Source of the DNA: Cyanophora paradoxa CCMP329
Lineage: Eukaryota; Plantae; Glaucophyta
Reading direction: 5' to 3'
DNA: 64,000 nucleotides
NCBI GenBank assembly: GCA_004431415.1
Contig: QPMI01000434.1
Coordinates: forward strand, 310,001 to 374,000
In this document: piece by piece, positions 2,032-61,621 of the stretch
Layout: each line of letters begins with the position of its first letter
Numbering within the stretch: the stretch's first letter is position 1
Notes under the pieces: model-generated
What the model was told of the DNA's origin: nothing
The model's input: only the letters and a program-made list of their open reading frames with translations
Databases searched by the model: none
Made by a program: the position numbers and the translations under genes

Positions 2032-4251
2032 ATGGCGGAGGATAGCGAGCAGACCGTCCTGTACGACGGCGAGGTCCCGGTGACGCTGCGGCTAAGCGAG
2101 CGCGAGTCCCGTCGCGAGAACCTCTCTATCAAGCTCAGCAGCGGCACGAACAAGTCGCAGCACAACCAGCGCTTTCTCACCGTGCAAGTCACATCCGAGG
2201 CGGACCCTTTCCTCCTGTACCTCTTCGACGTGACCGAGGAGGACTTCCAGGCGCTCAAAGCTGATCAGTCTTTGCTTGTAGACTTCTCAAAGTTCCCGGA
2301 CTTCTTCATCGAGCTCCTAGAGCACTGCATCCGAACGGGGCGGGAAGGCACCCCGCAGTGCGCGCCCTGTGGGATCGTTGCCGTGCCTGTAGCTAATTGA
2401 AGTCATGGACGTGTCGCGCAGATTTGCGGCGCAGCTCTCTTCTCGCGGGGGCTCATCCCAACTATCGATCGTGGAGACGACTCAGTTCAAGCAGATTTCC
2501 CACCTCGCCCTGACCGTCCGTGCCGGCAATGATGCGGCCGTCAAAAAGTACCTCGCGCAGCGCGTTCACACTTTCAAGGTTCGTGAGGACCCGAAGCTCG
2601 CGCCCGTCGAGCGGTTGCGGGCGTGAACGCCGCTGCGCCGCAGACGAAGCTGGAGAGCGTACAGAGGAGCTATTTGGATTGCCAAAGAGCGTTATCGGAC
2701 AAATCATCGGCGTTGGACGGATCGAGCAGGGAAGTGAGGGAGCTTCAGGAGCTGCAGCAGAGGCAGGCGGCGGACTTGAGGGCGCAGCACGCCCAGGCGA
2801 TGGCGGCTCTGAAGGAGAAGATGCTGGAGAGCCAGCAGGAAGCCGTCGCCGCCCTCCAGCTGGAGCACAGGGACGCCCTGGCCGTAGCCACCGAGAAGGC
2901 GCGCCACCCCTCGCCGCGAGCCTTGTCCGGGTCGCGTTCGACGGTGCGGGGCGCAGATCCAGAGGCTGGAGTCGCGCGTGGAGGAGCTCTCGAAGCGGCA
3001 GCAGGCTTCGGAGCAGGAGCGGGCGCGGCTCGAGTCGGAGGGGCGCGAGCTCGCGACGAACCTTCGGACGAAGGAGAACGAGCTCGAGGCGAGCCGCGCG
3101 GACCAGGCGAGGCTGCTTTCGGAGTGGCGGGAGGCGAACCAGTCGAAGTTCGAGCTGGAGAAGCGCCTCGGGGAGTCCGGGATGCGGATATCGGCGCTGG
3201 AGCAGCAGGTAAAGGGCAAGGACGAGATGCTGGCCAAGGAGCGCGAGCTCTACGAGCGCATCTGCGGCGAGAAGGCCCGCCCCAGCGCCCGCCCCCCCGC
3301 CCGAGCGCCGAGGCCTCCCCGTTCGCTGAGGCGGGCACCGCGCGCAGGGGACACTGGAGAAGTCGCTCGCGGCTGTCGAGGCGTCGTACCAGAAGGCGCA
3401 GGAGCAGCTGGAGGGCAGCTGCTCCGAGATTGTGAAGGCGCGGCCCAACTCGCTCGCCCGCCACATGGGCGCGGAGGCACTAACCTAGGGGGCGCGGCAG
3501 GGTAACGAGATCATCGAGCGGCTGCAGTCGGAGCTGCGGGGCACCAAGTCGAAGCTCAAGCTCCGCAACGCGCTCTTCACGCAGCTCGAGCAGGCGCGCC
3601 CGCCCGTGGGACTCGGATGTGTCCTCTTCCCGTCGGCCCCGCTGACGGCTCCGCAGGAGGCAAAGCAGAGGCAGGCAGCGACGGAGGGAAACCTGAAGGA
3701 GATCGCGGCGCTGAAGGAGCAGCTGGCGATGCAGACGAGCGCGGCCGAGTCGCTCAGGCACCAGCTGGAGCAGGCCCACGCCAAGCAGGCCGAGAGCGAG
3801 AAGCTCCTGCAGTCCAACCAGCAGGGTCCGCGTTGGGCGCAGCGCGCGCGCCTCCCTCTGCCACCGGCGCCCTGACGCTCGGCTCGCTCGCGCGCGCGCA
3901 GTGATCCAGTGGCTCAACAACCAGATCAACGAGTCGCAGCTGACGAGGAGCCCCGGCATTGCCGCCGGCCACTCGAGCTTCAGCTTCCGGCCCTCGGTGG
4001 GCCTCCCCCAGGCGCCCCCGCTCACGGCCGGCTACGCGCGGGAGCCGCCGGCGACGGCCCCGTCGGTGACGCCGCTGTACAAGTCGGCAGCGCTGAGCAC
4101 GCCAGCGACGGTCGCGTACAGGGGCCCGGGCGCGCTGGCCGGCACTGCCGCCGCCGCGCTGGGCCCCAAGGAGGCACCGGGAAAGGACACGAATTTCCTG
4201 AAGTACCTCACCGCGACGCCCCCGCCCACCTCCCTCTCCGCCGTCCACTAG
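2032..4251 (+). CDS. SAS6: Centriolar cartwheel protein SAS-6 (7 introns, 4 with GC donors)
   Basis: N-terminal head DPFLLYLFDVTEEDFQALKADQSLLVDFSKFP, ETTQFKQISHLAL, long coiled coil, LQSNQQVIQWLNNQINE. Confidence 0.93.
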
Positions 4252-4427
4252 CCCACTTGCTGTAAATGCCGTCTCTTTAGCTAGATCTGCTCACGCGCGT
4301 ACTTAGCTTATTCACTGAGCGCGGGGTTCCGCCCCGTGCATGTCCACCCGCTGTCTACGCCATCCGTGGGCCGTGTCGCGGGCACTGTTTGGACTCTGTG
4401 TGGCACGGAAGTCCGCCTAGGGGGAAG

Positions 4428-5630
4428 CTAGATCTTGCTCTGGAGCTCGTGGGCGAGGCGGTAGTTCTGGGCCTTGCTCCAGTCGAAGCTGGCGCCGGTG
4501 ATGGGGAGCTTGCGGCGGAACTCCTTCCAGGTCGAGCGGGAGAGGCCCTCCAGGCTCTCCAGCACGCCCCGGTGCACGCCCGCCTCCGCCTCCTCCACCC
4601 GCCCCGCCACCGCCCCCGCGAACGCCTCCGCGTCGCCCCGCTGCGCCCCCTTCGTCGTCTCTCCGAGTCGAGGGAGGGACCGGAGGGAGGACGCACGGGG
4701 AAGGCGACGTCGGCGGGGCCGCAGGGCTCGGAGACGCGGAGCTGCACGTTGCCGTCCTCGAAGGAGTGGACGAGTGCATCCACCTGCCCTGCCACGCTTG
4801 CCCCCTCGCCCCCCGCCGTGACGCGCACCGTCCACCGCGAGATCCACTCGCCGCCCCTGCCGCAGCGCCGCGTCGCGTCGCGCGGGGCCCGGGCGGGTGG
4901 GGCGCGCTCCGCCGTGGCCGCGCACCAGAAACTCGTCTGCTTCGACTTCGTAGAAGAGATGCGGACAGCGAGGGCGTCCGGCGCCGTGGCGTACACTCCG
5001 CTGTGCGCGTCCGGCGCGATCCGCAGCAGGTACTTCCGTATCGCCGCGTCCAGCGCCCGCCTGTGCGCCTCCAGCTCGGGGAAGGACGGGTCCCGCGGCT
5101 CCCGCGCCGTGCACGTCTACCGCCCGCAGCGTCGGTTGGAGGCTGTGGAGGCGCGCGAGCGCCGTGCACCCGTGTCGCATGGTCGACCGTCACTGCCTCG
5201 GAGCTGCGCGGGTTGTAGAAGCGCCCTTCCTCGAGTTCCGCAACGTCGCACACCAGCAGCTGCGGCGAGGACCTCAGAGGGGATGCTGCAACGTCGACGG
5301 CGAGCTGTAAATGCAGTAAAGGCCTTGGCACGGCGCGAGGAGCGCCCGGCGGCGCTCGCGGAAACGCAGCGGCTAGCTAGGGTGCAACGGCTAACACTTG
5401 CGGGCAGGCCAGGCGCACCGGCTGTTCCTCTGCCATTGGAATGCTAATGCAATGCGCAACGTCCCAATGCCTGGCGAAGCCATCCAGCCCCTCGGCGCCC
5501 GCGAGGACGGAGACATCTGAACGGCGGCCTCGGTCACTCCAGGGGCGGGATAGGGGCGAGAATCAGCACCTCGGAAGACAGCGTCCAGGCTCCCAGGGGG
5601 AGCCTGCAGCACGAGGTCCGCCGCAGCCAT
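4428..5630 (-). CDS. CAPZA: F-actin capping protein alpha subunit
   Basis: LQAPPG near the N-terminus, VHSFEDGNVQL, WKEFRRKLPITGASFDWSK at the C-terminus. Confidence 0.9.
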
Positions 5631-5665
5631 GGGTACGAGTGCAAAGTTTTGGCGCGCTTAGTCAA

Positions 5666-7626
5666 ATGGCGACGCCGGTGTCGCCGGGCGCCGGCTTCGT
5701 GATAAGACCGGAGGACGGCATCGAATGGGTGCGAGCGACGCGAGCGCGTGCGCCGCGTCCGAAGTAACCGCCGCCCTTCAGTTCCTCCTCACCTACTCGG
5801 AGTCCGACGCGGCGCTCAAGCTGATGCGGGTCATCGCGCGGGAGCGGCTGATCATCTCCCTTGAGAAGTGCGGCGCCCAGCCGGCTCAGTCTCCGCGTCG
5901 TCTCACGCTCGGCCGCAGCTTGAAAGACAATGTTCACGCCAGGCAGCTCCTCTCGAAGCGACGACGCCGGGCGGCAATGACACAGTCGCTGGAGTTGGAG
6001 GGCACGCCCCGCGCTGTCAAAAGAGAGCGCGTCTTTCAAGAGAAGGAGGCGCGCCGCCCGCCACCGCCCGCCCCCGCCCCCGCCCCTTCCAGGCGCCGAG
6101 CGGGCGGCCCTGTCGCAGCTCGGAGACGAGATTCCGAAGCTGCGCGCGATTCAAAAGCAGGAGCTGGAGGAGCTCGTGTCTGAGTGGGAGGACCGCGGCA
6201 CGCCCCTCTCCTCGCGCCTCAGCCCCATCCTCCTCAAGACTTCCCTCCTCGTCAACCAGGCCGCCCTCCCATCCCTCTCCCGCTTCTCCTCTTCTTCCTC
6301 CGCATCCACCACCCGCCGCCCGCTCCCGGCGCCGGCGCCGCCGCCGGGCGGCCCGGGCGCAGCGCCGCCCCGCCCGCGCTCGAGCGGGGACTCGCAGCGC
6401 GGGGAGGGCTCGGAGAGCGCGCGGCGGGGGCGGGAGGGCGAGCAGTACGGGGCGGCGTACGACGGGGAGCTGAGGCGGCTGCTGGACGCGCTGCTGGCGG
6501 CGATCGCGGGCGAGGGCGGCCGCTGGCGCGCGGCGCGCGACGTCGACGTGCGCGCCCTCGCCGCGGCCGCCGCGGCGCTCGCGAGGGTCCAGGCCGCCTT
6601 CGCGGAGCGCGCGGAGCGCACGCTCGGGGCCGCCGGCGAGCGCCTCGCCCGCCTCGAGGCCCGCCTCGAGGCCGCCGGCCCCGCCGCCCTCGCCTCCTCC
6701 CCCTCGCGCTCCCCGCGGGAGCTGGGGCGGGCGGGGCGGGGTCCTCGCGGTCCCCCCGTCGGGGGCGGCGGGGCGGGAGGAGGCGGCCCGGCTCCGGGCG
6801 CGCGTCGCCGAGCTCGAGGCCGTCAACCTGAACCTCGCCGGTCCGCCCGCCCCGCCCCGCCCCGCCCCGCCCCCTCCCAGCTCCACCGCACCCTCCGCCA
6901 GCTCCAGCACCCGAGAGCTCAAATCTCAGAGTCGTCGTTAGCTTTCAGAGCCTTCAGTGCAAATCACAGTCCGACGGCGACGCCGGCGCGCGAGGGCACA
7001 GAGTTTCAGGATTTCTAGAGGGCCCTCTCTGGCGCTGGCGCCCCGGCGAGCTCGCGCGCGCAGGGGGCATCGCGGCGATCTCGCGGGAGAAGGAGGCGCT
7101 GGCCTCGCGGGCGGCGGCCGCCGCCGCCGAGGCCGCCGCCCGCCGCGCCGAGCTCGAGGAGGCCCGCCGCGACGCCGCCGCCGCCCGCGCCCGGTCCGCT
7201 TTGCTTTGCTTTGCCCCGCCCCGCCCCGCCCCTCCGCGCGCCGTGCTGATGCGGGGCAGGCACGAGCGGGAGGCGGCGGCGGCGGCGCGGCGCATCCGGG
7301 AGCTCGAGGCGTCCCTCGCCCTCGCCGCCGCCGCCGCCGCGGGGCCCCGCTCGCCCTCCCCGGAGGCCCCGCACTCCGAGGCCCCCGCCGCCCCCGCGCC
7401 CTTCCCCTCCCCCGCCCCCTCCCTCGGCGCCTCACCCGCCGTCTCCCTCTCCTTCGCCGCCGCCGCCTCTGCCGGCGCCGCCTCCGGCCCCGCAGGGCCC
7501 GGCCCCTCTGCGGGGCCCTACCCCTCCCCGCCCCGCACGGGGCCGACCGGGCGAGCACGCCCCTCCTCGCGTGCGCCTCCCCCGCCAACGCCCCCCCCCC
7601 CCCCCCCCCCCCCCCCTCCCTCGTGA
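5666..7626 (+). CDS. Hypothetical coiled-coil protein (multi-exon)
   Basis: ATG 5666, GT/GC-AG introns join E/R/A/L-rich helical exons; no recognisable family. Confidence 0.5.
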
Positions 7627-7710
7627 GCGAGCGGGCGGCGCAGGGCGAGCACGCCGCGGGAGGCGATGCCCTCGCGCTTCGTCTCGGCGGGGCCGGGGAG
7701 CCCGCTCTCC

Positions 7711-10700
7711 ATGCCCCCCACCCCGGACCTCGCCAACGCCTCGTCCGCCCACTTCCCATTCTGAATCCGATTTCGAGTCCGACGGTGGGGCGCGCAGGTT
7801 CATATCGGAGGCGTTCGCCGGCTTCTCCTCCGCGGGGGCCTCCCTTCGCCACTCGGGCGAGGCGGGGCCCCGCCGCCCCTCCGCCCCACTCCCCCCGCCC
7901 GCTCCTCCGCAGCCGCCGCCCCGGAGGCGCCGGCGGCGGCGCGGTGCCCGCGGGTCGTGGCGAGCCCGCCGCCGCGCTCGGCGTCGCCCCCGGCGCGCCG
8001 CGGGGCGAGGGGCGAGGACGAGGAGCAAGCGAGCCCCGCGCCGGCGGTGCGGCCCCTCTGCGAGCTCCCCTCGTCCCCCACGCCGCCCCGGGACAACTCC
8101 TCCGGCCCCTCCTCCCCTTCGGCGGCCCCCGGCCCCTCTGACCCCTCCGGCACGCCGCCGCGTACCCCCGCCGAACCGCTCTCCGAGGCCCCTACCCCTG
8201 CGCGGCCCCTCGCCTGCTACCCTCCTCCCACGCCGCCCCCGGCCGCTGGGCCGGAGCAGCCCCCGGCGCCCACGCCTGCCCGCGCCGGTCCCGAGTCGCC
8301 GGAGAACGGGTGCGGGCGGGGCGAGGGGGCCGGCGGGGCCGCGCACCCGCCCACCACCACATCGTCGCCCCCAAAGGCCGGCGAGGAGGTGGATGCAGGG
8401 GGCGGCGGCGGGGCCGGCCTCGCGCCGCCCTCGCCGGCGCCGCCCACCGCCGCGCCAGAGCCGGCCCTCGGCCTCGCCGCGCCGCCCTCGCCGCCCCGCG
8501 AGGACTCTGGGCCAGCGGCGCGCACCGCGTCCGCGCCGCGGGGCGTGCCCCGCAGCTCCACCCTTTCCCGCCGCAAGGCCGCCCCGGCCCTCGACACGGT
8601 CCGCTTTCGTTTCCCTCGTTCCCCGCCGCGAGCGGCTGCCCACGACCCGCGCGCAGCAATCGCTCGCCCGCTCGATGCCAGCCGGCGCGCTCGGGCAGTT
8701 GGCCCCTCCCGAGGGGTCCGCCGGCCCCGCGCCGCAGCCGGAGCCGCTACCGGCGGCTGCGCGGGCGGCGCGGGGCGAGGCGGTAGTGCTTGACGACGGG
8801 GCGGCGGCCGGCGCCGCCGCCGGCGCGCCGGCGCGCAAGCGCCCGGTCCTCTCGAGCCAGCGCGCCGCCGCCGCCGCCGCGAAGGCAGCCGCCGCCTCGC
8901 CGCCGCCGCCGGCCCCCGCCCAGTCGTCGGGCCCGCGGTTCGTGGGGAGGGCGCGTGGAGCACGCTGGCGGGGCGCGGGGCGGCCTCGGGCCCGTGGCCG
9001 GCGCCGGGCCCCGCGGAGGCGGCCGAGGAGGCGGCCTGCGACGCCCTCCTCGACGCCCGCGTGCGCGACGCTTTTCCGACTCTAGGCGTATCCCCCTCAG
9101 AGTCACAAGCGAGTCGCGTGTGCGGCGCCGCGCGCGCCGCCGGCCGACGCCGCCGCCGCAGGTGGTGCTGCTGAGCGGGGCCGGGGCGCCCTCCGTCCCC
9201 TGCGCGAGCCTCGCCGAGGCCCTCCGCCGCGCCGCCGACGGTCCGCCCCGCCCCGCCTGCGCCCCTGCATCGCCCCGCCCCGCCCTCCTCGGCCCCACTC
9301 CCCAGCCCAACTTGGGCCGCATCCTATCCAGCTCAGACTCCTCGCCCCCGCCCCGACCCGACCCTCGGCCCCTTTTTCTAGCGTGGGATAGGGGGTGCGC
9401 GGCTCCCTCTCTGCCGGGCCGTCCGACGGTCGTTCAGAGCTTGCACCCAGCCCCGCCCCGCCCGCCCCGCGCCCTCGGCGACCCGACTCCATCCCCCCGC
9501 GGGCTCCCGCTTCCGCCGGAGACGCTCCCCCCCCTCCCCCCCCCCCCTCTCTCCCCCCCCCCCTCCCCCTTCCCTCGCCTCATGCTGCGGGGGTAGGGGA
9601 CGGGGTGCTGCTGCGGGCGGGGACGCACTACGTCGAGCCCGGCGCCGACCTCGCCCTTTTCCGGTGCCCCCGCGCCCGACTTCCCGCCCCGCGCCGCGGG
9701 GAGCGAGAGCGAGCGCGAGCGCCAGAGACCTCTAAGGATAGAGAGGGGGCGGATGCCGCAGTCGATCTTCTCTGCCAGGCTGTTCTGCGCGGGAGGGGCG
9801 GGGCGTTCTGACGCTGCCCGCGGGGGGCGCGCGCAGGTCGGTGGAGATCGTGGGGGAGGCGCTGCCGCCGGCCCCGGACCGCGAGCACCGCGCCTGCCTC
9901 GCCTCGCCCCTCACCAAGACCGTGCGCCCGCCCGCCCGCCCGCCCGCCCCCGAGGGCCGCCCTGGAGGCGGGCCCCCTCACCTCGCCCGCCCGGCCCCGG
10001 CGCGCGGCAGTACGGGCGCCCGAAGCCGCTGCTGGCGGTGGGCGAGGCCGCGGCCGTGCGCCTCGTCAACGTCGACTTCAACGAGGAGGCGCGCCCCCCC
10101 GCCTTCCCCTGCGGCGCCCGCGCCCCGGGCACTCCGCTCACCCCCGCCCCAGCGCAAGGCGACGGGCGAGGGCGGCGTCATCGATGTGGCAGCCACCGCC
10201 CAGGCGCGGCCCCGCCCCGCCCTCTAGAGCATGTGGCCGGCCCCCCGGCCTTGGCTGACGCGGTGCCCGGAGCTGACGCGGGGAGCAGCTGGCGATGGAG
10301 TCGTGCACCGTCCGCTGCGCCGCCCCGCGGCCCTGCCTCGCCGTCCGCTACGAGGCCCGGGTCCGCCCGCGCCCGTCCCCGCGCCACGCCATGCGTCATC
10401 TTGGGCTCTGACGCCTGTGCGCGCGGGCCAGGCGCGGGCGGCGCGCTGCGTCTTCGAGCACCCCGAGGGCGGCCCCTACGGCGCCGCCGGCGTCCGCGTC
10501 TCCGAGCTCGCCCAGGCGCCTCCCGCGGCTCGGGTCCGGGTCGGACGGGGTCAGGTCTGATGCGGTGCGGTGCGGGCAGGTGGCGCTGGAGGGGTGCGAG
10601 GCGGCGGGGGGCCACACGGGCTTCGCCCTCGCCGTCTTCGGGGAGGAGAATCTCGTCGCCCCGCCCTCGACCCTCGCCGACTGCACCGCCCGCTCCGCCC

Positions 10701-11456
10701 AGGTCAGGGAGGCCCCAGGGCACAGGCGCCCTACTTGGCACACGCCCTGTACCTCGCCAACGCCTCGCTCCCGCCCTCCCCGCAGGTCGGGTTCGCGCTG
10801 GCGGGCGCCGCGAGGGCCTCGCGCTGCGCGGCGGCGGAGTGCGCGGCCTTCGGGTTCCGCGTGAAGGCGCCGGCGCCCGAGCCCGGCGCCCCGGGCCGCT
10901 GGCGGGGCGAGGAGGCGGCGCTGGAGGCCTGCGAGGCCGCCGCCTGCGGCACCGGCTTCCTCCTCCTCCCCGGCGGCCCCACGCGCCTCACGCGCTGCAC
11001 AGCCCGCGCCTCCCGCGCCGCCGGCTTCAGCGTCGTCGCCTCCAAGGAGTCCCTCCAGGAGGTCCGCGAAGCAAAGCAAGCCTCGCAGAGCCCCGCCTTC
11101 TTCCCTTCCTTGACGCGGCGCAGCTGGTCTCGTGCGCGGCGTCCGGAAGCGGCGTGGCCGGCCTCGTCGTCCGCTCGGGCGGCCCTGGCGTGCTCGTGCG
11201 GGGCGCCACGTTCGAGGGGCACGACGGGAGCGTCTCGGGCCCCAAGGGCGACCCCAACCTCGCGCCCTTCCGCTCGGCGGGCCTCAAGAAGAGGGTGGAC
11301 GTCGTGATCTCCCCCGAGGGGGCCCACGGCGAGGTCCGCATGGAGGGGTGCCGCCGGGCGGAGGCGGGCGGCGCGGCGGGGGACCTGGGGGCGGGCGAGG
11401 GGGCGCCCCCTACGGTCGCCGAGGTCGCCCTGCCGCCGGCGGAGCCCGGCCTCTGA
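7711..11456 (+). CDS. Hypothetical protein with a low-complexity N-terminus and a probable right-handed parallel beta-helix (pectin-lyase-like) region
   Basis: SLAEALRRAADG..GVLLRAGTHY..VEIVGE pattern followed by repeated LEGC/LTRC/..GF.V units; start uncertain. Confidence 0.5.
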
Positions 11457-11559
11457 GCGCTCGGCCGTCCCGTGCCGCAGTGCCAGGGTGTAGCTTTGAG
11501 TTAGGTATAATTCAAATGATTCTGGCAGCCTGGCAGTGAGCCCCACGACGGGCTTCTGT

Positions 11560-17978: not shown

Positions 17979-18236
17979 TTTACGATCAGAATCAGATCTA
18001 GAGTTGCGATTACGATCAGAATCAGAGTTGCGATTACGATCAGAATCAGAGTTGCGCTCTCACCCTGGAGTCACCCAAACAGCGCGGGTACAGTTAAAGC
18101 GCTGTGGTAGGAGGTCCGGCGCGCCCGTAGCGTAAAAAGAGCATTGAGTCTGTAATGGAGTTCGCAACCCTCTCCAGAGTTGCGATTACGATCGGAATCA
18201 GAGTTGCGATTACGATCGGAATCAGAGTTGCGATTA
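17979..18236 (+). repeat. 24-bp tandem repeat GAGTTGCGATTACGATC(A/G)GAATCA on both sides of a family-A element
   Basis: About 3 units at 17979-18056 (A variant) and about 2.5 units at 18177-18236 (G variant). Confidence 0.9.
18056..18142 (+). repeat. Family-A element, copy 2 (near full length, small internal duplication)
   Basis: GCTCTCACCC..TCACCCAAACAGCGCGGGTACAGTTAAAGCGCTGTGGTAGGAGGTCCGGCGCGCCCGTAGCGTAAAAAGAGC compared with 61208-61284. Confidence 0.9.
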
Positions 18237-29606: not shown

Positions 29607-29744
29607 GTGCGCATGCCGCGCGCCCGCGCCTCGCCCCAGCAGCCCTCTGATCGCAGCGCTGCTGCTCCTGCCACCTGCAGCAATTTCGAGATGGTACGCA
29701 ACACATCTCGCAGGCTTTTATTCCACCCTGACGCGCGCGGGCAG
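29607..29744 (+). repeat. 138-bp copy of the intron-microexon-intron block at 32175-32312
   Basis: Five mismatches counted over 138 nt; begins at GTGCGC and ends at AG. Confidence 0.92.
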
Positions 29745-29903
29745 AGCACGAACACTGATGATGAACATGAACAGCTTCGTTTTAATAGTTACAGTTGCAG
29801 TAGTTTCCTTCCTCCTCGAATTTGACACTCACAGATACATGGTAACAATAGCTTTACTTTAATAGCCACAGTAGTAAAAAAAGGTAGGACAGGGAAACTA
29901 CTT

Positions 29904-29942
29904 TAGGTAGGAGGTCCGGCGCGCCCGTAGCGTAAAAAGAGC
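29904..29942 (+). repeat. Family-A element, copy 3 (5'-truncated)
   Basis: TAGGTAGGAGGTCCGGCGCGCCCGTAGCGTAAAAAGAGC. Confidence 0.9.
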
Positions 29943-30199
29943 ACACCGTGCCCTGCGATATAATTGCGAATCGCCAGGACTCTCCAAGTTTCCCGCGGAT
30001 GCCGGGAATCGAGTGTTCAGAGACCTCACTTCTTCCGGAGCCCGGTCGGCAGAAGCGAAGGAGTCAGGAACAGGTAGCCAGTTAAAAAGCAGGTCGTGCT
30101 GAACGCTCTCCTGGCCGAATGGGGCCGTCCAGAAGGCAGAGACTCTGAGACTCGAATCGGGTTGCCAAGTTGAATTTCGGTCTGCCAGGGCTGAGTATG

Positions 30200-30356
30200 G
30201 TACTTGCAATTTCAGACACGACCAACGACATCTGGACTAGCCCTAGTAGCTGTTTGGCTAGCAGTGGGCCGCCGGTCGAATCTATGCATATGGGCTCGAA
30301 TCTATGCATATGGGCATTAGGTAGGAGGTCCGGCGCGCCCGTAGCGTAGAAAGAGC
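30200..30356 (+). mobile_element. Putative mini non-autonomous element: 21-nt candidate left end (30200-30220) plus family-A copy 4 (30318-30356)
   Basis: GTACTTGCAATTTCAGACACG is identical to 60820-60840, and the 39-nt right part is identical to 61246-61284. Confidence 0.6.
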
Positions 30357-31582
30357 ATATGGGCTCAGTCAGACACTACGAGATCGAAACCTAGGTCTAC
30401 TTACCCTACGGGCTTAAGATCATAGGATCAAAGGTGCGGGCCGTGCCCGGAGGCTCGCCCGTTCCCGCCATGGACTGGCCGCTAAGGGAGAGGAATGCTG
30501 CCCGAGGGGGCCGAAACCCCCACGAGCCCCGGACCGGGAGACCGGTACCGGGGGGCCTCCCCCGCTCCCGAAGGTGCGTAAGGTGGAGCCGCATCGCGCC
30601 GCGTCGGATCGAAGCTGGGGTGCTGGCGCCATCGCAATCCGTGCGGATCGCCTGCGCGACGCCGCGCGCGCGAAATTAAATCAAAATTTTAAACGAAATC
30701 GAAATCGAAGGGATCCGGAGCGCACTGGTGCCCAATGTGAGTGCTGCTCGCCGAAGAGCGCACAGAGGGATTGGGTGGCCTGCCAGAGCGGGGCGCGTGT
30801 AGACCCATACGAAACCCCGGCAAAGGGGCGCGCAGGACCCTGCGCGCGCGACGTCGGCGCTCGACCGCGATCGCGAGCGCCAGAAGCTTAAAAAAGAGGC
30901 AAGCTTGAATTTAAACAAGCTCGATCGCGCGCGCGCGCGCTGCGCATGCATATGCGCGTACCTGAGCGCGTACCTTGCAGGACGTTCTCGTTCGCCTCTT
31001 CGACGACCCCGCACCAACGGCGGCTCACCAAGCGCAGCGATGCCTGGGCACCAGAAGATGAGCCCAAGAACATCGTCCGGCAAGTCTTAAGCTTGCGCAT
31101 TAAAATATTACGGCAGGCGCTCTCGGCGCGCGCTCAACCACGAGCGCGCTCTCGATCACCTCACAAGGGTGCGCTTCTCCGCGTGGCCGCTGGAGCTCGC
31201 GATTGTACTTCTCGAAAAATTCAACAATCCGCGTTCCGGGGCTGTCCCGGATCACGATCCAGCGCTAGTTGCGATCGCAGCGGGCTCCCGCGGTCCACGA
31301 AAGATTGATCGCTAGCCGCAGATCGAGCGTTGGCGTCGGGGCCGTGCGCGCCCGGCGTGCTCTGCTGGGGTGCACTCGAGCTGCGGCGCTTCGCCCCATG
31401 GCCACCTAATCCGAGAAGCTGCCAGGCCAGCCGCATGCACAAAGCACTCGAAACAAGCTCGTTCGCGGTAGAGCGAGAGCGAGCGGTGAGCTGCGAGGCA
31501 GTGCGAGGCTGCGAGCTGCGAGCTGGGGTACAGCGGACAGAGTCTAAGCTCCGTGCAGCACCGCCGCCAGCCCTCCGCTGGG

Positions 31583-34500
31583 ATGCTCGCGCCTCAGGAG
31601 GAGGTCCTCCTGCGAGCCGTAGGATACGAGGGCAACACGTTCGCGCGCCTCGCCAACAAATTCAACTCGCTCTGCAAGAATGGCGGGCAGCCGGGGGTCA
31701 ACCTGCCTTGCTTCACAGCATTCGTGATTCGTCGCGGCGCACACGGTATGCTCTGCGACCCAGCGCCTCCAGATCCCATTCGACGCCGCGGCCGCAGAGA
31801 GCAAGGCTGCGCGGTACTTCCGCGCGGGGCACCGCAACGGAGGTCCGCCCGACTCGCCGCTGGCTGCGAATGAGTTTTGTTTTGTCGTCGCGGCGCTCTG
31901 GCCCCTCAAAAACGCCGGTTCGTCTTGTTCAATTTTCCTTGATGGCCGACTTAGCTTCCCGCCTCCCGCTCGCAGAATACTCGCCGTACAGGGGTGCGCC
32001 GTGCCGCTTTGTCATGTGGCGTCGAGTGCTGATCGACGACTTCGCCGCAGACGAGTGGCGGAGGCTGCGTGCCTGCTACGTGTTCGACTGCTACGATGTG
32101 CACTTCCGCGGGCAGCTCGGCCCCCCCGAGCTCCAGGAGATGTGCCACGACCTTCTCCAGAAGCGCGGCGAGAAGTGCGCATGCCGCGCGCCCGCGCCTC
32201 GCCCCAGCAGCCCTCTGATAGCAGCGCTGCTGCTCCTGCCACCTGTAGCAATTTCGAGATGGTACGCAACACATCTCGTAGGCTTTCATTCCACCCTGAC
32301 GCGCGCGGGAAGATCCCGAGCTTCGTGAAGGAGCTTCTAACGAACGTGTTCAAGAAGCCCAGCGACGGTGCGATCTCGCGGGACGAGTTCGTTCGCGCTG
32401 TCGTCTCGAACGAGCTGCCCGTGCGCCCCCCTCGGAACCTCCCTTAGCTAGCCTCGGCGTGCGACGCCCGGCTCCCAGGGCGTCTCGTTCCTCTTCCGCC
32501 TTTCCAAATCGCCGTTCTGCCCCCGGACGCGCTTCCGCTGGCTCCGCGACGCCACAAAGGTCCGCCTGGAGCGCTTCGACCCTGCCACCGTCGGCCTCAA
32601 CATCGGTGCCCTCCCCTGCCTTCCGCCACGCCCTGGCTTGCGCGCCTCGCCCCTCCCCGCCTGCGGCTTAGCATGCTGCAGGCTACGAGACGCGGTCGGG
32701 CCCGGCCCGGCTCATGCCTTCGAACGCGGCCATTGCCGACATTCTCGTGAAGACTCTTTCTGCCGAAGCTGTGCGCTCGCTGCCTTGCACCCCGCCTACT
32801 CCTCCTGCCCCCACTCGACGACTCGAGGGCTGTTGACGCGAACGCCCGGCAGTCCGCGCAAGCGCTGCGCGAGCGCATCCTCGAGACGGCTCCCTCCGGT
32901 GCGCCGCGCGGCCGGCCCCGCCGCCCCGCCCGCCCCTCCCTGACCGCCGCGCCGCAGTGCACGATCAGCCGGGCAAGCGCTTCGACGACGCGCACCAGAC
33001 GATCCTGCACCTGCTCCAGCCGCGCCCTTCCCACCCCGACTGGGGCTTCCAGCCTTTCACCCTCTCTACTGTGCTCAGCCGCGCTGCGAAGTTGCCCCCC
33101 GCGCCCCGCTCATGGCCGCGCAGGCCACTCTTGAGAACCTCTGCTTGCAAGCCCGCAAGATTTTCGAAGCCGAGGCGCGTGATGTCGTGCCCACGGGAAG
33201 CTCGGTTCCGCCTAACGCTGTACGCCACGCAGGCGAACATTCTGTACCTCGACTCGGCTCCCATCCGCATCTACGGCGACATTCACGGCCAGTGCGCCGA
33301 CTCTCCGCCGCCGACGTCGCCGCCCGGTCGCGCCTCACGCGCGCGGGGCAGGTACGAGGACCTGCTGCAGTTCTTCCACGCGACCGGGTACCCCGTCGAC
33401 TTCTGCCCCAACGGCGGTCCGGCCGGCCGCGCCCTCCCTCGAGCGTCCGCCCCGCCTAATGGCCCCGCCAGACATCATGTACATGCAGTACCTCTTCATG
33501 GGAGACTACGTTGACCGTGGCTGCTACTCCCTCGAGGCGCGCCGCCTCCGCGCCGTGCTCGCCGCCGCCGCGCCTGACCCCGCTCGACCCCGCGCCCGCC
33601 CCGGCAGGTCGTTGCTCTCCTCTTCGCGCTCAAGATCCGCTGTGCGCTTGCCGTGCGCTGCCCGCACCCGTGGCGTGGCTTACGGAGCGCCAGATCCGCG
33701 CCGGATATTCTTGCTGCGGGGCAACCACGAGGACCGTGACGTCAACACGATCTACGGGTTCCGGCAGGAGTGCGAGGCGCGTCCGTCCTCCCGGGTCTCC
33801 CGGCGCCGTTTTTTGGCGGCCTGCGGCTTACGTGCGCTCCGGAGAACAGGAGCGGCTGGGCAAGTCGGACGGGGCGCGGATCTGGGAGCTCGTGAACCAG
33901 GTCTTCGACCAGCTGCCCATCGCCTGCATCATCGCCGGCGCCATGTTCTGTGTGCACGGCGGCATCGGCCGCGTCAAGAACCTCCTGCAGGCCCGCCAGC
34001 CCCCGTCCTCGCCCCGCCTCGCCTCGCTCGCCGCCGAGCCGGAGGCCCGCAGGTCTTCTCCATCCCCAAGGGCAAGTCGGTGATGCAGCTGCTGCGGGAG
34101 AACATGCGCGCGGAGGCCGAGCTGCTGCAGGCGCGGCCGCCCCGCCCCGTCCCTGCCGCACCCTGCCTGCTGGCCCCTTCCTGACCGCCCCGCAGGACCT
34201 GCTGTGGAGCGACCCGACGCCGGGCGACAGGGACGCCGGAATCCAGGTGCGCTGTACCCCCTTTCAATCGCCTTCCCGCCCCCGCGCGCTCCGCGCCGAA
34301 GCGGGGAGCAGCAAAGCCAGCGGGGGCCCAACACGTGCTACTTCGGGCCGGACATCGCCCGCGCCTTCCTCACGGAGAACAACCTCCAGGCGCGCCCAGC
34401 TTTCCGTTCACCGCCCGGGTTTCTGTCGTCTTACTTTCGCCTTGCATCGTTCCAGTTTATCGTCCGTGCGCACGAAGTGGTCCCAGACGGCGTCGACTGG

Positions 34501-37640: not shown

Positions 37641-37781
37641 GAATTACGATAGCAAATGTTCTATATATAAGCTTAAGAAGTACCGTAGTACGACCAGATC
37701 AATCAATTACGATTCGATGACCATCAAGAATTACGACCAGCGCTGGCCGCAGAGCTAGCCAGCGAGACAAGAATTACGACC
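37641..37781 (+). repeat. Cluster of four AATTACGA words with unique spacers
   Basis: AATTACGA at about 37642, 37705, 37729 and 37772. Confidence 0.7.
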
Positions 37782-41255: not shown

Positions 41256-41351
41256 CACGCGTCTACGGGTACAGCACACACTACGTGCATACGGCACGAC
41301 TGTCGACGTCGACGCTGTGAACAAAGGGTCGGGAGAGTCCTGGGGAACGGA

Positions 41352-41444
41352 GCCCCTCTATCCGGTCCATGCGATAACCGGCGCCGCACAAGACTGTGGG
41401 CGGAAGAGGTTGGCCATTGGTGGCCAACCAACCGGAGGGAGAGC
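41352..41444 (-). ncRNA. Candidate omegaRNA scaffold of Fanzor A
   Basis: About 45 nt after the Fanzor stop; perfect 9-bp hairpin GGTTGGCCA-CCAA-TGGCCAACC plus CCGC..ACA/TGTGCGG and CCGGTT/GACCGG stems; starts GCTCTC like family A. Confidence 0.45.
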
Positions 41445-41489
41445 TAGCGCTAGCGCTATAGCTAGCGCTAGCTAGCTATCATAGTATAG

Positions 41490-41943
41490 CTAAAACTGCA
41501 GGCGCTGCCTCTTCGCTGGGGACGGGGCCGCCGACGAGGAGCCGGCCGCCTCCGGGTCCGGATCCGGTGCGGGGTCCGGGGCTCGAGCTGGCATGTCGAC
41601 GGACGGCACCGGGGCCTGCGCATGCACAAAAACGTTTATCCGGTCAAAGAAACGTTTATCCGGTCAAAGAAACGTGCAAAAACGTCTCTGACTGCGCACC
41701 GTCCGTGCACCGGCAGCCCCAACGACGTCCAGCGGAGGGGCACACCCGTCAGCGTCGTCCACACCCGAGGCCACCCGAAGCATGATGTTCCTGCGAGCGA
41801 TGTACACGCAGCGTGAGGGGCAGGAAAACTGGGGCCCCCGGCCGGCGCGTGCACACGCACCGAGCCCCGTTGAAGTCGCGGTCCATGATCGCCCGGCACG
41901 CCGGGCAGCGGAAGACCTTGTTGCCCCGAAGCTTGCTGTGGAT
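41490..41943 (-). pseudogene. Fanzor/TnpB-like nuclease C-terminal fragment A (2 introns, NLS-like C-terminus, 5'-truncated)
   Basis: Spliced IHSKLRGNKVFRCPACRAIMDRDFNGAR^NIMLRVASGVD...PSPAKRQRLQF*; GT-AG introns at 41791-41860 and 41616-41699. Confidence 0.85.
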
Positions 41944-42352
41944 GAATTACGACCAGCTAAGAATTACGACCAGCTAAGAATTACGACCAGCTGCAGGGAG
42001 CTAGCCGGCATTTATATATAATTACGATCAGAGCTAAGCAAAGAAGTTGAAGATTACGATGCTCGGAATCACATGAATTATAATTACGATGCTCGCAATT
42101 ACGATCCTTCTCTAGACCTGCCTTGAGCGCAGGGGCGCATGCGGGAGAGGAAAAGTAGGGGGAATTACGATGCTTGCAACTGGAATTACGACGCTCGCTT
42201 AAGCTTTGGGGGGAATTACGATTCACCTAGACCTGCATGCCGGCGCCGTGGATTTACGATCGTCTAGAGAAGACTGAGAAGACGACTGAGAAGAATTACG
42301 ATTTCGATCGCCTATCGCCCGCAATTACGATCATCGGATGCCCGGAATTACG
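41944..42352 (+). repeat. Array of about 14 (A)ATTACGA words with mostly unique spacers
   Basis: Three 17-nt tandem units GAATTACGACCAGCTAA, then about 11 further words, all on the same strand. Confidence 0.8.
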
Positions 42353-52154: not shown

Positions 52155-52835
52155 CTACGGCGCGGTCCATGGCCTGCTGCGCAGGAACGCGGCGGGCTCG
52201 TAGGCGGCGACCCCTGCGCACCCCGTGAGCGAGGGGTCCGCGCAGTTGAAACGAATGGTGCGGGTGGCGCACCCTTCAAAACGCGGATGGTCGCGCCTGG
52301 GCCGATGCCGAAATCTGATATGCACTTGATGCTGCCCAGCTCTATCCACAATCGACGGCCTTCGAACAGCATGATTTGCTGCGGCTGCTTGAGCTCGAAT
52401 TCGCCTGTCGGAGCGATAAGTGACAAGAACGGGCGAGGGGGGCAAAGATGTGCGTACGTTCTATCAATTGTATAAGATACATAATCGAGCAATGGCCTGT
52501 GATTTCGATCTTGATCTCCTTTGTGGGGGAAACTCTGCACGTGAAGCAGTGAGCTGCCGCACGCCGCAGCGCTAGCAGCCCCTCTGCGATGCGGCAGCTC
52601 ACTTCTTCACTTTGCCGCCCTTCCCCTTGCCTGCACGTGAAGCAGTGAGCTGCCGCACGCCGCAGCGCTAGCTAACCCCTCCTCGATGAATGCACTGACC
52701 TTTTCCCTTGCCGCCTTTTGCCTCCTTCGCTTTCTTCAAGGCGGCAAGGGGAAAGGTCAGCGCATTCATCGGAGAGGGGGTAGCTAGCGCTGCGGCGTGC
52801 CTTATCAGCCTCGGTTTCAAGCTCGGGGATGTCTG
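52155..52835 (-). CDS. Small protein with a GK-rich stretch and a ubiquitin-like C-terminal domain (5' end not located)
   Basis: Spliced ..KAKEAKGGKGKGKGKGGKVKKVSPTKEIKIEI..QQIMLFEGRRL..ISDFGIGPGATIRVL. Confidence 0.55.
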
Positions 52836-60534: not shown

Positions 60535-60772
60535 AAATGGGCGCGAGGAGGGCCGCTGAGGCTTCGCCCGACCTTTGGGACCCGCAGGGGCCCAGGGCTT
60601 GACTTAGTAATTTCAATTTTGATTTCAATTTTGATTTCGGAGCTCGAGTTCACGCGTACTACGGTACGTTAAATCGTGATCGCAACTGCAACAGGGCCCG
60701 CCGGGCGCCGGGCCGCCAGCGCCGGATCCGATAGCGCTAGCGAGCTCTATGTGACGATATTGATGAGATGGG

Positions 60773-60823
60773 GTACATCGTATACAACCCGAATTCGTGC
60801 CCCCGGGCTTGTATACGATGTAC
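60773..60823. repeat. Inverted repeat (15-bp perfect arms plus a 4-bp inner stem) just upstream of Fanzor B
   Basis: GTACATCGTATACAA-CCCG ... CGGG-C-TTGTATACGATGTAC. Confidence 0.85.
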
Positions 60824-60840
60824 TTGCAATTTCAGACACG

Positions 60841-61146
60841 TGCGGCAAGATCAACTACGGGCTCGGCTCGAAGAGGGTCTTCGAGTGCCGCCCCGGGTGC
60901 GGCTTCCGGGCGGACCGCGACGGCGGCGCCGCGCGGTGCGTGTTGTGTCTATACACGCCTATACACAATCGCTGCTCCCCCCGCCTAGTCCCGACACGGC
61001 CTAGCCACGGCATAATTTTCCGTCTAGGCCTAGGGCCGGCTCGCCCTCCCAGCGCCGCCCGATCGCAATCGTAATCGTACTCTTGCAGGAGCATCTTCAT
61101 CCGCTACGGCACCGGCGTGGACGCGAAGCGCCTGCTCGGTTCGTAG
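60841..61146 (+). pseudogene. Fanzor/TnpB-like nuclease C-terminal fragment B (1 intron, 5'-truncated)
   Basis: Spliced CGKINYGLGSKRVFECRPGCGFRADRDGGAAR^SIFIRYGTGVDAKRLLGS*; GT-AG intron at 60936-61088. Confidence 0.85.
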
Positions 61147-61207
61147 CCAGCTAGCGCTAGGCTCCGATCCCCTTTTCTCCATCAGGGCACCAGTCCCTGC
61201 GGGTTAC

Positions 61208-61284
61208 GCTCTCACCCAAACAGCACGGGTACAGTTAAAGCGCTGTAGGTAGGAGGTCCGGCGCGCCCGTAGCGTAGAAAGAGC
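61208..61284 (+). ncRNA. Family-A element, full copy: candidate omegaRNA scaffold / right end of Fanzor B
   Basis: 77 nt starting 62 nt after the Fanzor stop; closed by GCTCT/AGAGC with ACCC/GGGT and ACAG/CTGT stems; four more copies in the window. Confidence 0.6.
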
Positions 61285-61621
61285 TCAAGAACTCAGCCCA
61301 CGGCAGCGCTAGCTATTGTTTCTCGTGCTGCTAATCGTATTTTTGTTGGTGGTTCTCCTATTAGTTATTTAGAACGTCCACAATCAGGAATTGACGCAAA
61401 AGCTAGCTAGATCGAGGTGCTCGATCGGTACCGCGTTCATCCAGTGCGCCCAGTTTCACGGATAAGCTGTTCAGCCCAGCGCAACCAGCGCCCCTGCCGG
61501 AGAGACCGCCGGCCTGTTGAACAACAGAATCATCGAGGCGCTCAGCTGCACTTCTGAGTGAACCGCGGTTGCGCTGTAGCAGCGGGCGGCCGCTGGGCGC
61601 TGCGGCAGCGAGCACGCGATC

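Follow-up and report, generated by a model that had tools for sequence, protein, structure and literature searches.

A probable 3′ remnant of a multicopy Fanzor transposon family, ending in a repeated right end, in the nuclear genome of Cyanophora paradoxa

We analysed a 64,000-nt window of nuclear DNA (64% G+C) of the glaucophyte Cyanophora paradoxa, contig QPMI01000434.1, for remains of Fanzor transposons. In all likelihood, positions 60841–61284 of this window are the dead 3′ tail of a Fanzor transposon (TnpB superfamily) whose family is young and multicopy. The remnant retains the last 51 codons of the nuclease gene, a conserved intron, ~140 nt of trailing DNA and the exact right-end boundary of the family. 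Taken alone, the locus is ordinary transposon debris of little importance. Its value lies in pointing to a Fanzor family of IS607/Fanzor2-like lineage in this glaucophyte that is young and rich in copies. Among the papers searched, none names Fanzor together with Cyanophora, and one survey supplement had no Cyanophora entry.

The C-terminal 51 residues of a TnpB/Fanzor nuclease, with half of the zinc ribbon and RuvC-III, are encoded at 60841–61146 (+ strand). Part of the penultimate exon of the gene (60841–60935, hereafter exon 1) carries what is left of the zinc ribbon, its second half (CGK...C RPG C), together with RuvC-III (DRD), and was matched in tblastn, Pfam and PDB searches; the translation of 60838–60936 is TCGKINYGLGSKRVFECRPGCGFRADRDGGAAR. 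It is followed by a phase 2 GT-AG intron of 153 nt (60936–61088, + strand), recognized from the sequence and from spliced gene models, which interrupts the RuvC-III motif (..GAAR^SI..). The last exon (61089–61146, + strand) reads g followed by SIFIRYGTGVDAKRLLGS; 61089–61143 codes for 18 residues and is closed by a TAG stop codon (61144–61146). We searched with exon 1 alone and took the joined reading from database gene models; exon 2, with its 18 residues, lies below the 20-residue minimum of the search. Against Pfam, exon 1 matched PF07282 (Cas12f1-like TNB, formerly OrfB_Zn_ribbon) with E=1.5×10−4 and 22.3 bits, which is under the 26.3-bit cut-off because the exon is only half a domain. Its best match in the PDB was 9b0l, the mimivirus TnpB-like protein L79 (Fanzor2), at E=0.013, with an alignment that covers the C-terminal zinc ribbon and RuvC-III. 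A preliminary description of this DNA, made without database searches, had read a zinc-ribbon/RuvC-III fragment across a GT-AG intron and expected a TnpB/Fanzor profile match. The exon matches and the gene models with the same spliced reading bear this out, and the profile match was obtained with exon 1 alone.

With P0014, the longest gene model of the family, as the tblastn query, only residues 1038–1087 of 1087 were placed at the remnant, and the homology begins at 60841. Missing are RuvC-I (DPG), the RuvC-II glutamate and half of the zinc finger including its first cysteine; of the RuvC triad, only RuvC-III is left, and the remnant therefore cannot encode a nuclease. Judged by its sequence, it is a pseudogene fragment.

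When exon 1 was compared with 1.8 billion protein representatives, four gene models matched at 94–100% identity, all from EukProt EP00741, Cyanophora paradoxa. At least 16 gene models of this species carry the same spliced C-terminus; P0001–P0004 and P0007–P0017 end in ...DRDGGAARSIFIRYGTGVDAKRLLGS, which equals the spliced reading of the remnant. These further members of the family are known as protein gene models (EukProt) only, not as DNA. Most of them are stubs of 75–156 residues with differing N-termini, which, at the level of predicted proteins, indicates many 5′-truncated copies. Some stubs in three contigs share an odd N-terminus, MLIL[R/C]RFRQLL, and the truncated forms themselves have therefore multiplied. 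P0011, P0014 and P0016 matched PF07282 with 40–43 bits, over the cut-off. The earlier proposal of an internally deleted member of an algal Fanzor family is supported to this extent: the remnant is deleted or truncated, and its family has many copies, with at least 16 models that have a common spliced C-terminus.

The type of Fanzor can be judged from P0014 (1087 residues), which contains PF07282 as its only domain. DPG stands at residue 613 and E-x6-CxxC (EAWTSKTCGVC) at 1028, followed by DRD. Fanzors and 'pro-Fanzors' are told apart from ordinary TnpBs by DPG together with an alternative glutamate that precedes the first CxxC by six residues (Yoon et al., PMC10711439), and P0014 has both. The spacing from DPG to this glutamate is 415 residues, as against 120–160 in PMC10711439; a low-complexity insert or a mis-modelled intron accounts for the difference. 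In the PDB, P0014 matched the mimivirus Fanzor2 (9b0l, E=6×10−6), followed by Cas12m, Cas12f and TnpB chains, and no Fanzor1 chain was returned even at E≤10. The closest relatives outside Cyanophora are TnpBs of ~320–380 aa (323–380 residues) that are 35–40% identical to P0014. The alignment shows shared LLPTFET/APEFRT, EAYTSKT/EAWTSKT and DRD..GAR.IF motifs, and the gene of one close relative lies directly behind a MerR-HTH (helix-turn-helix)/resolvase gene, which is the IS607 arrangement. A homologue search with residues 560–1087 of P0014 returned nothing. The PDB matches and the nearest relatives suggest a Fanzor2/IS607-like lineage; the Fanzor1-like assignment of the preliminary description is not supported by them.

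With the Fanzor2/IS607-lineage TnpBs, such as the Acanthamoeba polyphaga mimivirus Fanzor2 (PDB 9B0L, best-scoring among solved structures) and the cyanobacterial 'pro-Fanzor' TnpBs (Yoon et al. 2023), the Cyanophora family shares the DPG of RuvC-I, the DRD of RuvC-III and an alternative glutamate placed six residues ahead of the zinc finger. It differs from them in that the genes are nuclear and intron-rich, in the long N-terminal extension and low-complexity insert of the 1087-residue model, and in a second cysteine pair that is CxxxC and not CxxC. Unlike IS607-type elements, moreover, the Cyanophora models show no serine recombinase, and the copies are 5′-truncated. To our knowledge, 5′ truncation has not been described for IS607-type elements. 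Among the relatives, P0018–P0022 (ENA metagenome contigs L001 and L002) keep DPG, the alternative glutamate and DRD and no longer have any of the four zinc-finger cysteines (..TSKTRSWDG..RD.SGFGMDRD..); P0019 stands in the IS607 arrangement with a MerR-resolvase gene.

The stop codon of the remnant is followed by trailing non-coding DNA (61147–61284, + strand) that ends in ..GTAGAAAGAGC (..AAAGAGC). By blastn we found this end at four other places in the window, as the preliminary description had claimed. Copy A (1–49) is cut by the window edge and is identical to 61237–61284 (aligned to 1–48, 100% identity). Copy B (18057–18143) is 5′-truncated, carries an 11-nt internal duplication and three differences, and lies within a 24-nt tandem array (61212–61284 aligned to 18071–18142, 96% identity, E=3×10−28). 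Copy C (29901–29943) comprises ~42 nt (61243–61284 aligned to 29901–29942, 95% identity), and a weaker match may extend it back to 29887. Copy D (30318–30357), of 39–40 nt, is flanked by two ATATGGGC (61246–61284 aligned to 30318–30356, 100% identity). All five copies, the remnant included, are on the + strand with 95–100% identity and share one last base (..GTAG/AAAAGAGC); the base after it is A in four of the five. A profile search with filters off detected only these five right ends in the window. Copies B, C and D are thus 5′-truncated copies with a common 3′ end, and copy A has the same end. The four pieces measure 39–87 nt.

Since the four other partial copies stop at exactly the equivalent of 61284, this position is, on the evidence of the alignments, the real right-end boundary of the family. 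The exact boundary (..GTAGAAAGAGC, usually followed by A) tells where the guide of the family's putative guide RNA should start. Exact-pattern scans for the right-end core in metagenome and viral contigs gave no match. The 77-mer at 61208–61284, which the preliminary description had presented as the repeated element, does begin 62 nt past the stop codon. As a unit it did not hold: it looks 77 nt long because copy B alone reaches back to its start, so that its length is the truncation point of copy B.

The window contains a second, divergent Fanzor tail on the − strand (41317–41946; ..KVFRCPACRAIMDRDFNGAR^NIMLRVASGVDD..), whose intron interrupts the same codon as that of the remnant and has the same donor (cg/gtgcgtg). 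The right-end sequence of the main family is missing from its tail, and the profile search found no right end there. The truncated 5′ side of this tail adjoins a field of AATTACGA motifs.

In TnpB and Fanzor systems, the omegaRNA lies between the 3′ end of the ORF (open reading frame) and the right end of the transposon. The stretch 61147–61284 has this position, between the stop codon (61146) and the right-end boundary, and variable flank follows beyond it, as in TnpB/Fanzor omegaRNA genes. By position and analogy, the last ~200 nt before 61284 (the last exon and the trailing DNA) probably encode the omegaRNA scaffold in intact members of the family, with the guide supplied by the flank. The only solved Fanzor2 omegaRNA has a scaffold of 205 nt (ApmFz2) with a pseudoknot that is missed by secondary-structure prediction (PMC11832414). 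A scaffold of this length would therefore need the last exon and all trailing DNA (~61080–61284) and extend beyond the 77-mer. The main copy, at 60841–61284, keeps the whole ~200-nt stretch; the short copies (stumps) keep at most its last 40–90 nt.

Several observations weigh against our interpretation of the locus. The right end folds no more stably than shuffled sequence in its 77- to 196-nt versions, in a test that misses pseudoknots: relative to dinucleotide shuffles, the minimum free energy (MFE) of the 77-mer gave z=−0.26, and the 98-, 159- and 196-nt versions gave z=+0.41, +1.39 and −0.71. The 77-mer could thus not be confirmed as the structured element that it had been taken for. Rfam searches of the right end at both thresholds returned no family match. 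The copies are nearly identical and too alike for covariation; copy B has four differences from the main copy, and only one substitution falls on a base predicted to be paired. It preserves the pairing (A-U to G-U), which is too little for covariation. The link between full-length ORF and right end is drawn from the C-terminal peptides, which are identical, and from this single locus. Finally, target duplications are weak, with one 8-bp candidate (copy D), none for copy C and ambiguous cases for copy B and the main copy.

ARAGORN found no tRNA in the right end. Complementarity at 13 of 16 positions between 61094–61109 and 61267–61282 would close a fold of ~200 nt and is no better than chance pairs in the region. 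Unlike TnpB/Fanzor omegaRNA genes, the Cyanophora right end carries no detectable structural signal or Rfam match, and the 77-mer is much shorter than known scaffolds. The pseudoknot of the solved Fanzor2 RNA also escapes prediction, and the negative folding result is therefore compatible with an omegaRNA.

The right-end copies could be thought to form a working, dispersed guide-RNA library in which each flank serves as a guide and the RNAs are loaded in trans by the Fanzor protein of intact copies. We regard this as very unlikely. Three of the four other copies keep just 39–48 nt, far under any known scaffold (205 nt in ApmFz2), and the right end lacks excess structure. The copies are young, given their identity of 95–100%, each has a different 3′ flank, and intact-looking members exist (P0014), all of which speaks for such a library. 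However, near-identity is expected of young debris without selection. The main copy with its whole ~200 nt upstream of the boundary and the retained pair between main copy and copy B would also suit a library.

On its 5′ side, the Fanzor tail is joined at 60840/60841 to a hairpin module of ~100–130 nt (60714–60840, + strand; its 5′ limit lies between 60714 and 60741). The hairpin has arms of 18 nt (60773–60790 and 60806–60823); the MFE of 60771–60825 gave z=−5.2 against shuffles, and none of 200 shuffles folded as well. The composite of hairpin module and truncated tail is present at one other locus at least. Gene model P0007 (EukProt tig00020614_g12213, contig tig00020614), an AATF gene fused to the tail, reads ..RALCDDIDEMGYIVYNPEFVPPGLVYDVLAISD and then TCGK.. 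across the module, with homology that reaches at least 60741 and perhaps 60714. P0007 is an Augustus model that joins the AATF/TRAUB gene to the Fanzor tail via a translated GC-rich spacer and is almost certainly a mis-prediction. Both P0001 and P0007 require two extra bases relative to the window for the frame of the module; the copy in the window is therefore an additional one, or else it stems from another assembly.

The last 21 nt of the module (60820–60840) occur again at 30200–30220 (+ strand, 100% identity, E=6×10−5), 97 nt upstream of copy D. There the module end joins unrelated DNA at the exact base where the Fanzor homology starts at the main copy. The sequence suggests that the 5′ module may be a left end with a deletion hot spot, or a separate module that naturally ends in ..TTTCAGACAC(G). 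Of the candidate left end put forward in the preliminary description, the hairpin holds up and is found at the P0007 locus too, whereas its status as a left end is in doubt, since the last 21 nt recur on unrelated DNA and the module may be a separate one.

The sequence of the main copy has kept its intron, which places the copying at the DNA level. The family may spread or decay by a right-end-anchored process that leaves 3′-intact, 5′-truncated and intron-bearing DNA copies. Target-primed reverse transcription, too, typically leaves copies that share a 3′ end, are 5′-truncated to varying extents and show microhomology at the junctions, so that the 3′ module could be taken for the tail of a retroelement or short interspersed nuclear element (SINE), and the copies for 5′-truncated retrocopies. 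We consider this highly improbable. The main copy keeps a spliceosomal intron, no A-rich or simple-repeat tail is present at the boundary, and the right end has no similarity to tRNA or known RNA. Furthermore, a Pfam scan of the ten longest ORFs in the window found no transposase, Rep/helicase or reverse-transcriptase domain.

A pattern of this kind has been described in Chlamydomonas, where the copies of CRe-1/2/3 are complete at the 3′ end, are shortened to varying degrees at the 5′ end, have internal deletions and now and then carry additional DNA at the 5′ junction; Bao & Jurka see one-ended rolling-circle transposition of Helitron2 elements as the cause (PMC3627910). The Cyanophora family resembles these Chlamydomonas reinhardtii elements (Fanzor1, non-autonomous Helitron2) as an algal Fanzor family with mostly 5′-truncated or internally deleted copies and intact 3′ ends, with non-Fanzor DNA sometimes present at the 5′ junction and with a hairpin on the 5′ side. 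In contrast to CRe-1/2/3, the Cyanophora protein is not Fanzor1-like, no T-rich target and no 3′ hairpin were seen, target duplications are weak and no Rep/helicase partner is known. The pattern of a kept 3′ end and a lost 5′ end, first described for the unrelated Chlamydomonas Fanzor1 elements, thus appears in a second Fanzor lineage, which hints that the nuclease/right-end module, and not the carrier transposon, may be what the pattern is tied to.

A carrier is nevertheless possible, and we hold it to be the most serious alternative, although a doubtful one. The shared 3′ module would then be the terminus of a Fanzor-carrying transposon (Helitron2-like, or another rolling-circle or one-ended element), the stumps would stem from one-ended transposition from this terminus, the hairpin module would be the other end, and a guide-RNA gene would not be required. 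The CRe-1/2/3 pattern, which includes variable target duplications (PMC3627910), speaks for such a carrier, as do the strong hairpin near the 5′ side and the 8-bp duplication flanking copy D. There is also a perfect 8-nt inverted match between 60719–60726 and 61257–61264, the latter 20 nt from the 3′ end, where the 3′ asymmetric terminal inverted repeat (ATIR) of a Helitron2 would sit; this match, however, is GC-rich, has a chance expectation of ~0.02–0.1 and was spotted after the fact. A 3′ subterminal hairpin is missing, the right end is not unusually stable and the insertions are not behind TTTT-like motifs. Moreover, no Rep/helicase domain occurs in the ten longest ORFs, and the protein lineage is IS607/Fanzor2-like, which published work puts in IS607-type elements and not in Helitrons.

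The two ATATGGGC that flank copy D are a possible 8-bp target duplication, but they lie inside a local 20-nt tandem repeat. At copy B, the 24-nt array makes the call ambiguous. Microhomology is seen at the 5′ junctions of two copies: the target has GTTGCG where the element has GTTACG (copy B), and a GGTAGGA is found just upstream of the GGTAGGA of the element (copy C).

Bacterial TnpB cuts the donor joint and drives recopying. The stumps could accordingly be scars of abortive homing or repair, formed after a full element had been excised or cut beside its right end: recopying on a sister copy as template would have set out from the right flank, aborted and been closed by microhomology joining. 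The microhomology at the 5′ junctions of copies B and C, neither of which has a clear target duplication, agrees with this sequence of events, but copy D has an 8-bp duplication, and we think such an origin unlikely. With respect to mechanism, we place right-end-anchored one-ended copying first and abortive recopying after cleavage second; retroposition is the least likely.

A more far-reaching claim would be that, in a eukaryote, the stumps of an IS607/Fanzor2-lineage element record mobility or repair anchored at its putative omegaRNA end, by one-ended copying or by abortive nuclease-driven homing. We give this little chance of being right. If it were true, orphan copies with a full scaffold, such as the main copy, could still guide a nuclease made elsewhere, and Fanzor activity would be linked to the way in which the elements spread in a nuclear genome.

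Two other candidate traces of insertion were rejected. AGCGCTAGC at 60733 and 61305 could have been a 9-bp target duplication of the main copy. This word and its reverse complement, however, occur 16 times in the 64-kb window (e.g. 41443–41471, 52568–52783, 60733, 61150 and 61305), compared with ~0.5 expected (~30-fold), often just past stop codons or beside Fanzor tails. In addition, its 5′ copy is probably within the shared unit, since the P0007 homology probably runs through it. The second candidate, the 32 nt after copy B as carried-along flank, begins with ATT like the interrupted 24-nt repeat and can be read as a diverged unit of it.

The motif (A/G)ATTACGA was found 21 times on the + strand and twice on the − strand, in three clusters (18009–18209, 37642–37773 and 41945–42324), two of which touch Fanzor-family pieces. 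Insertions may favour this motif, or it may simply be frequent between genes. The truncated-copy model P0002, from another contig, starts with the 24-nt repeat in translation (ITIRIRVAITIGIRV). Copies C and D are bracketed by a direct duplication of 139 nt with 96% identity (29607–29745 and 32175–32313, 2.6 kb apart).

The remnant lies in a spacer of ~1.1 kb between an upstream amino-acid transporter gene (Aa_trans, E=2.6×10−10) and a downstream RNA polymerase gene of the Rpb2 family, both on the + strand. Elsewhere in the window, the region 2400–11500 contains many long overlapping ORFs on both strands, of up to 567 residues and without Pfam match, in G+C-rich, low-complexity DNA. A direct repeat of 59 nt with 90% identity (302–360 and 3711–3769) is unrelated to the Fanzor family.

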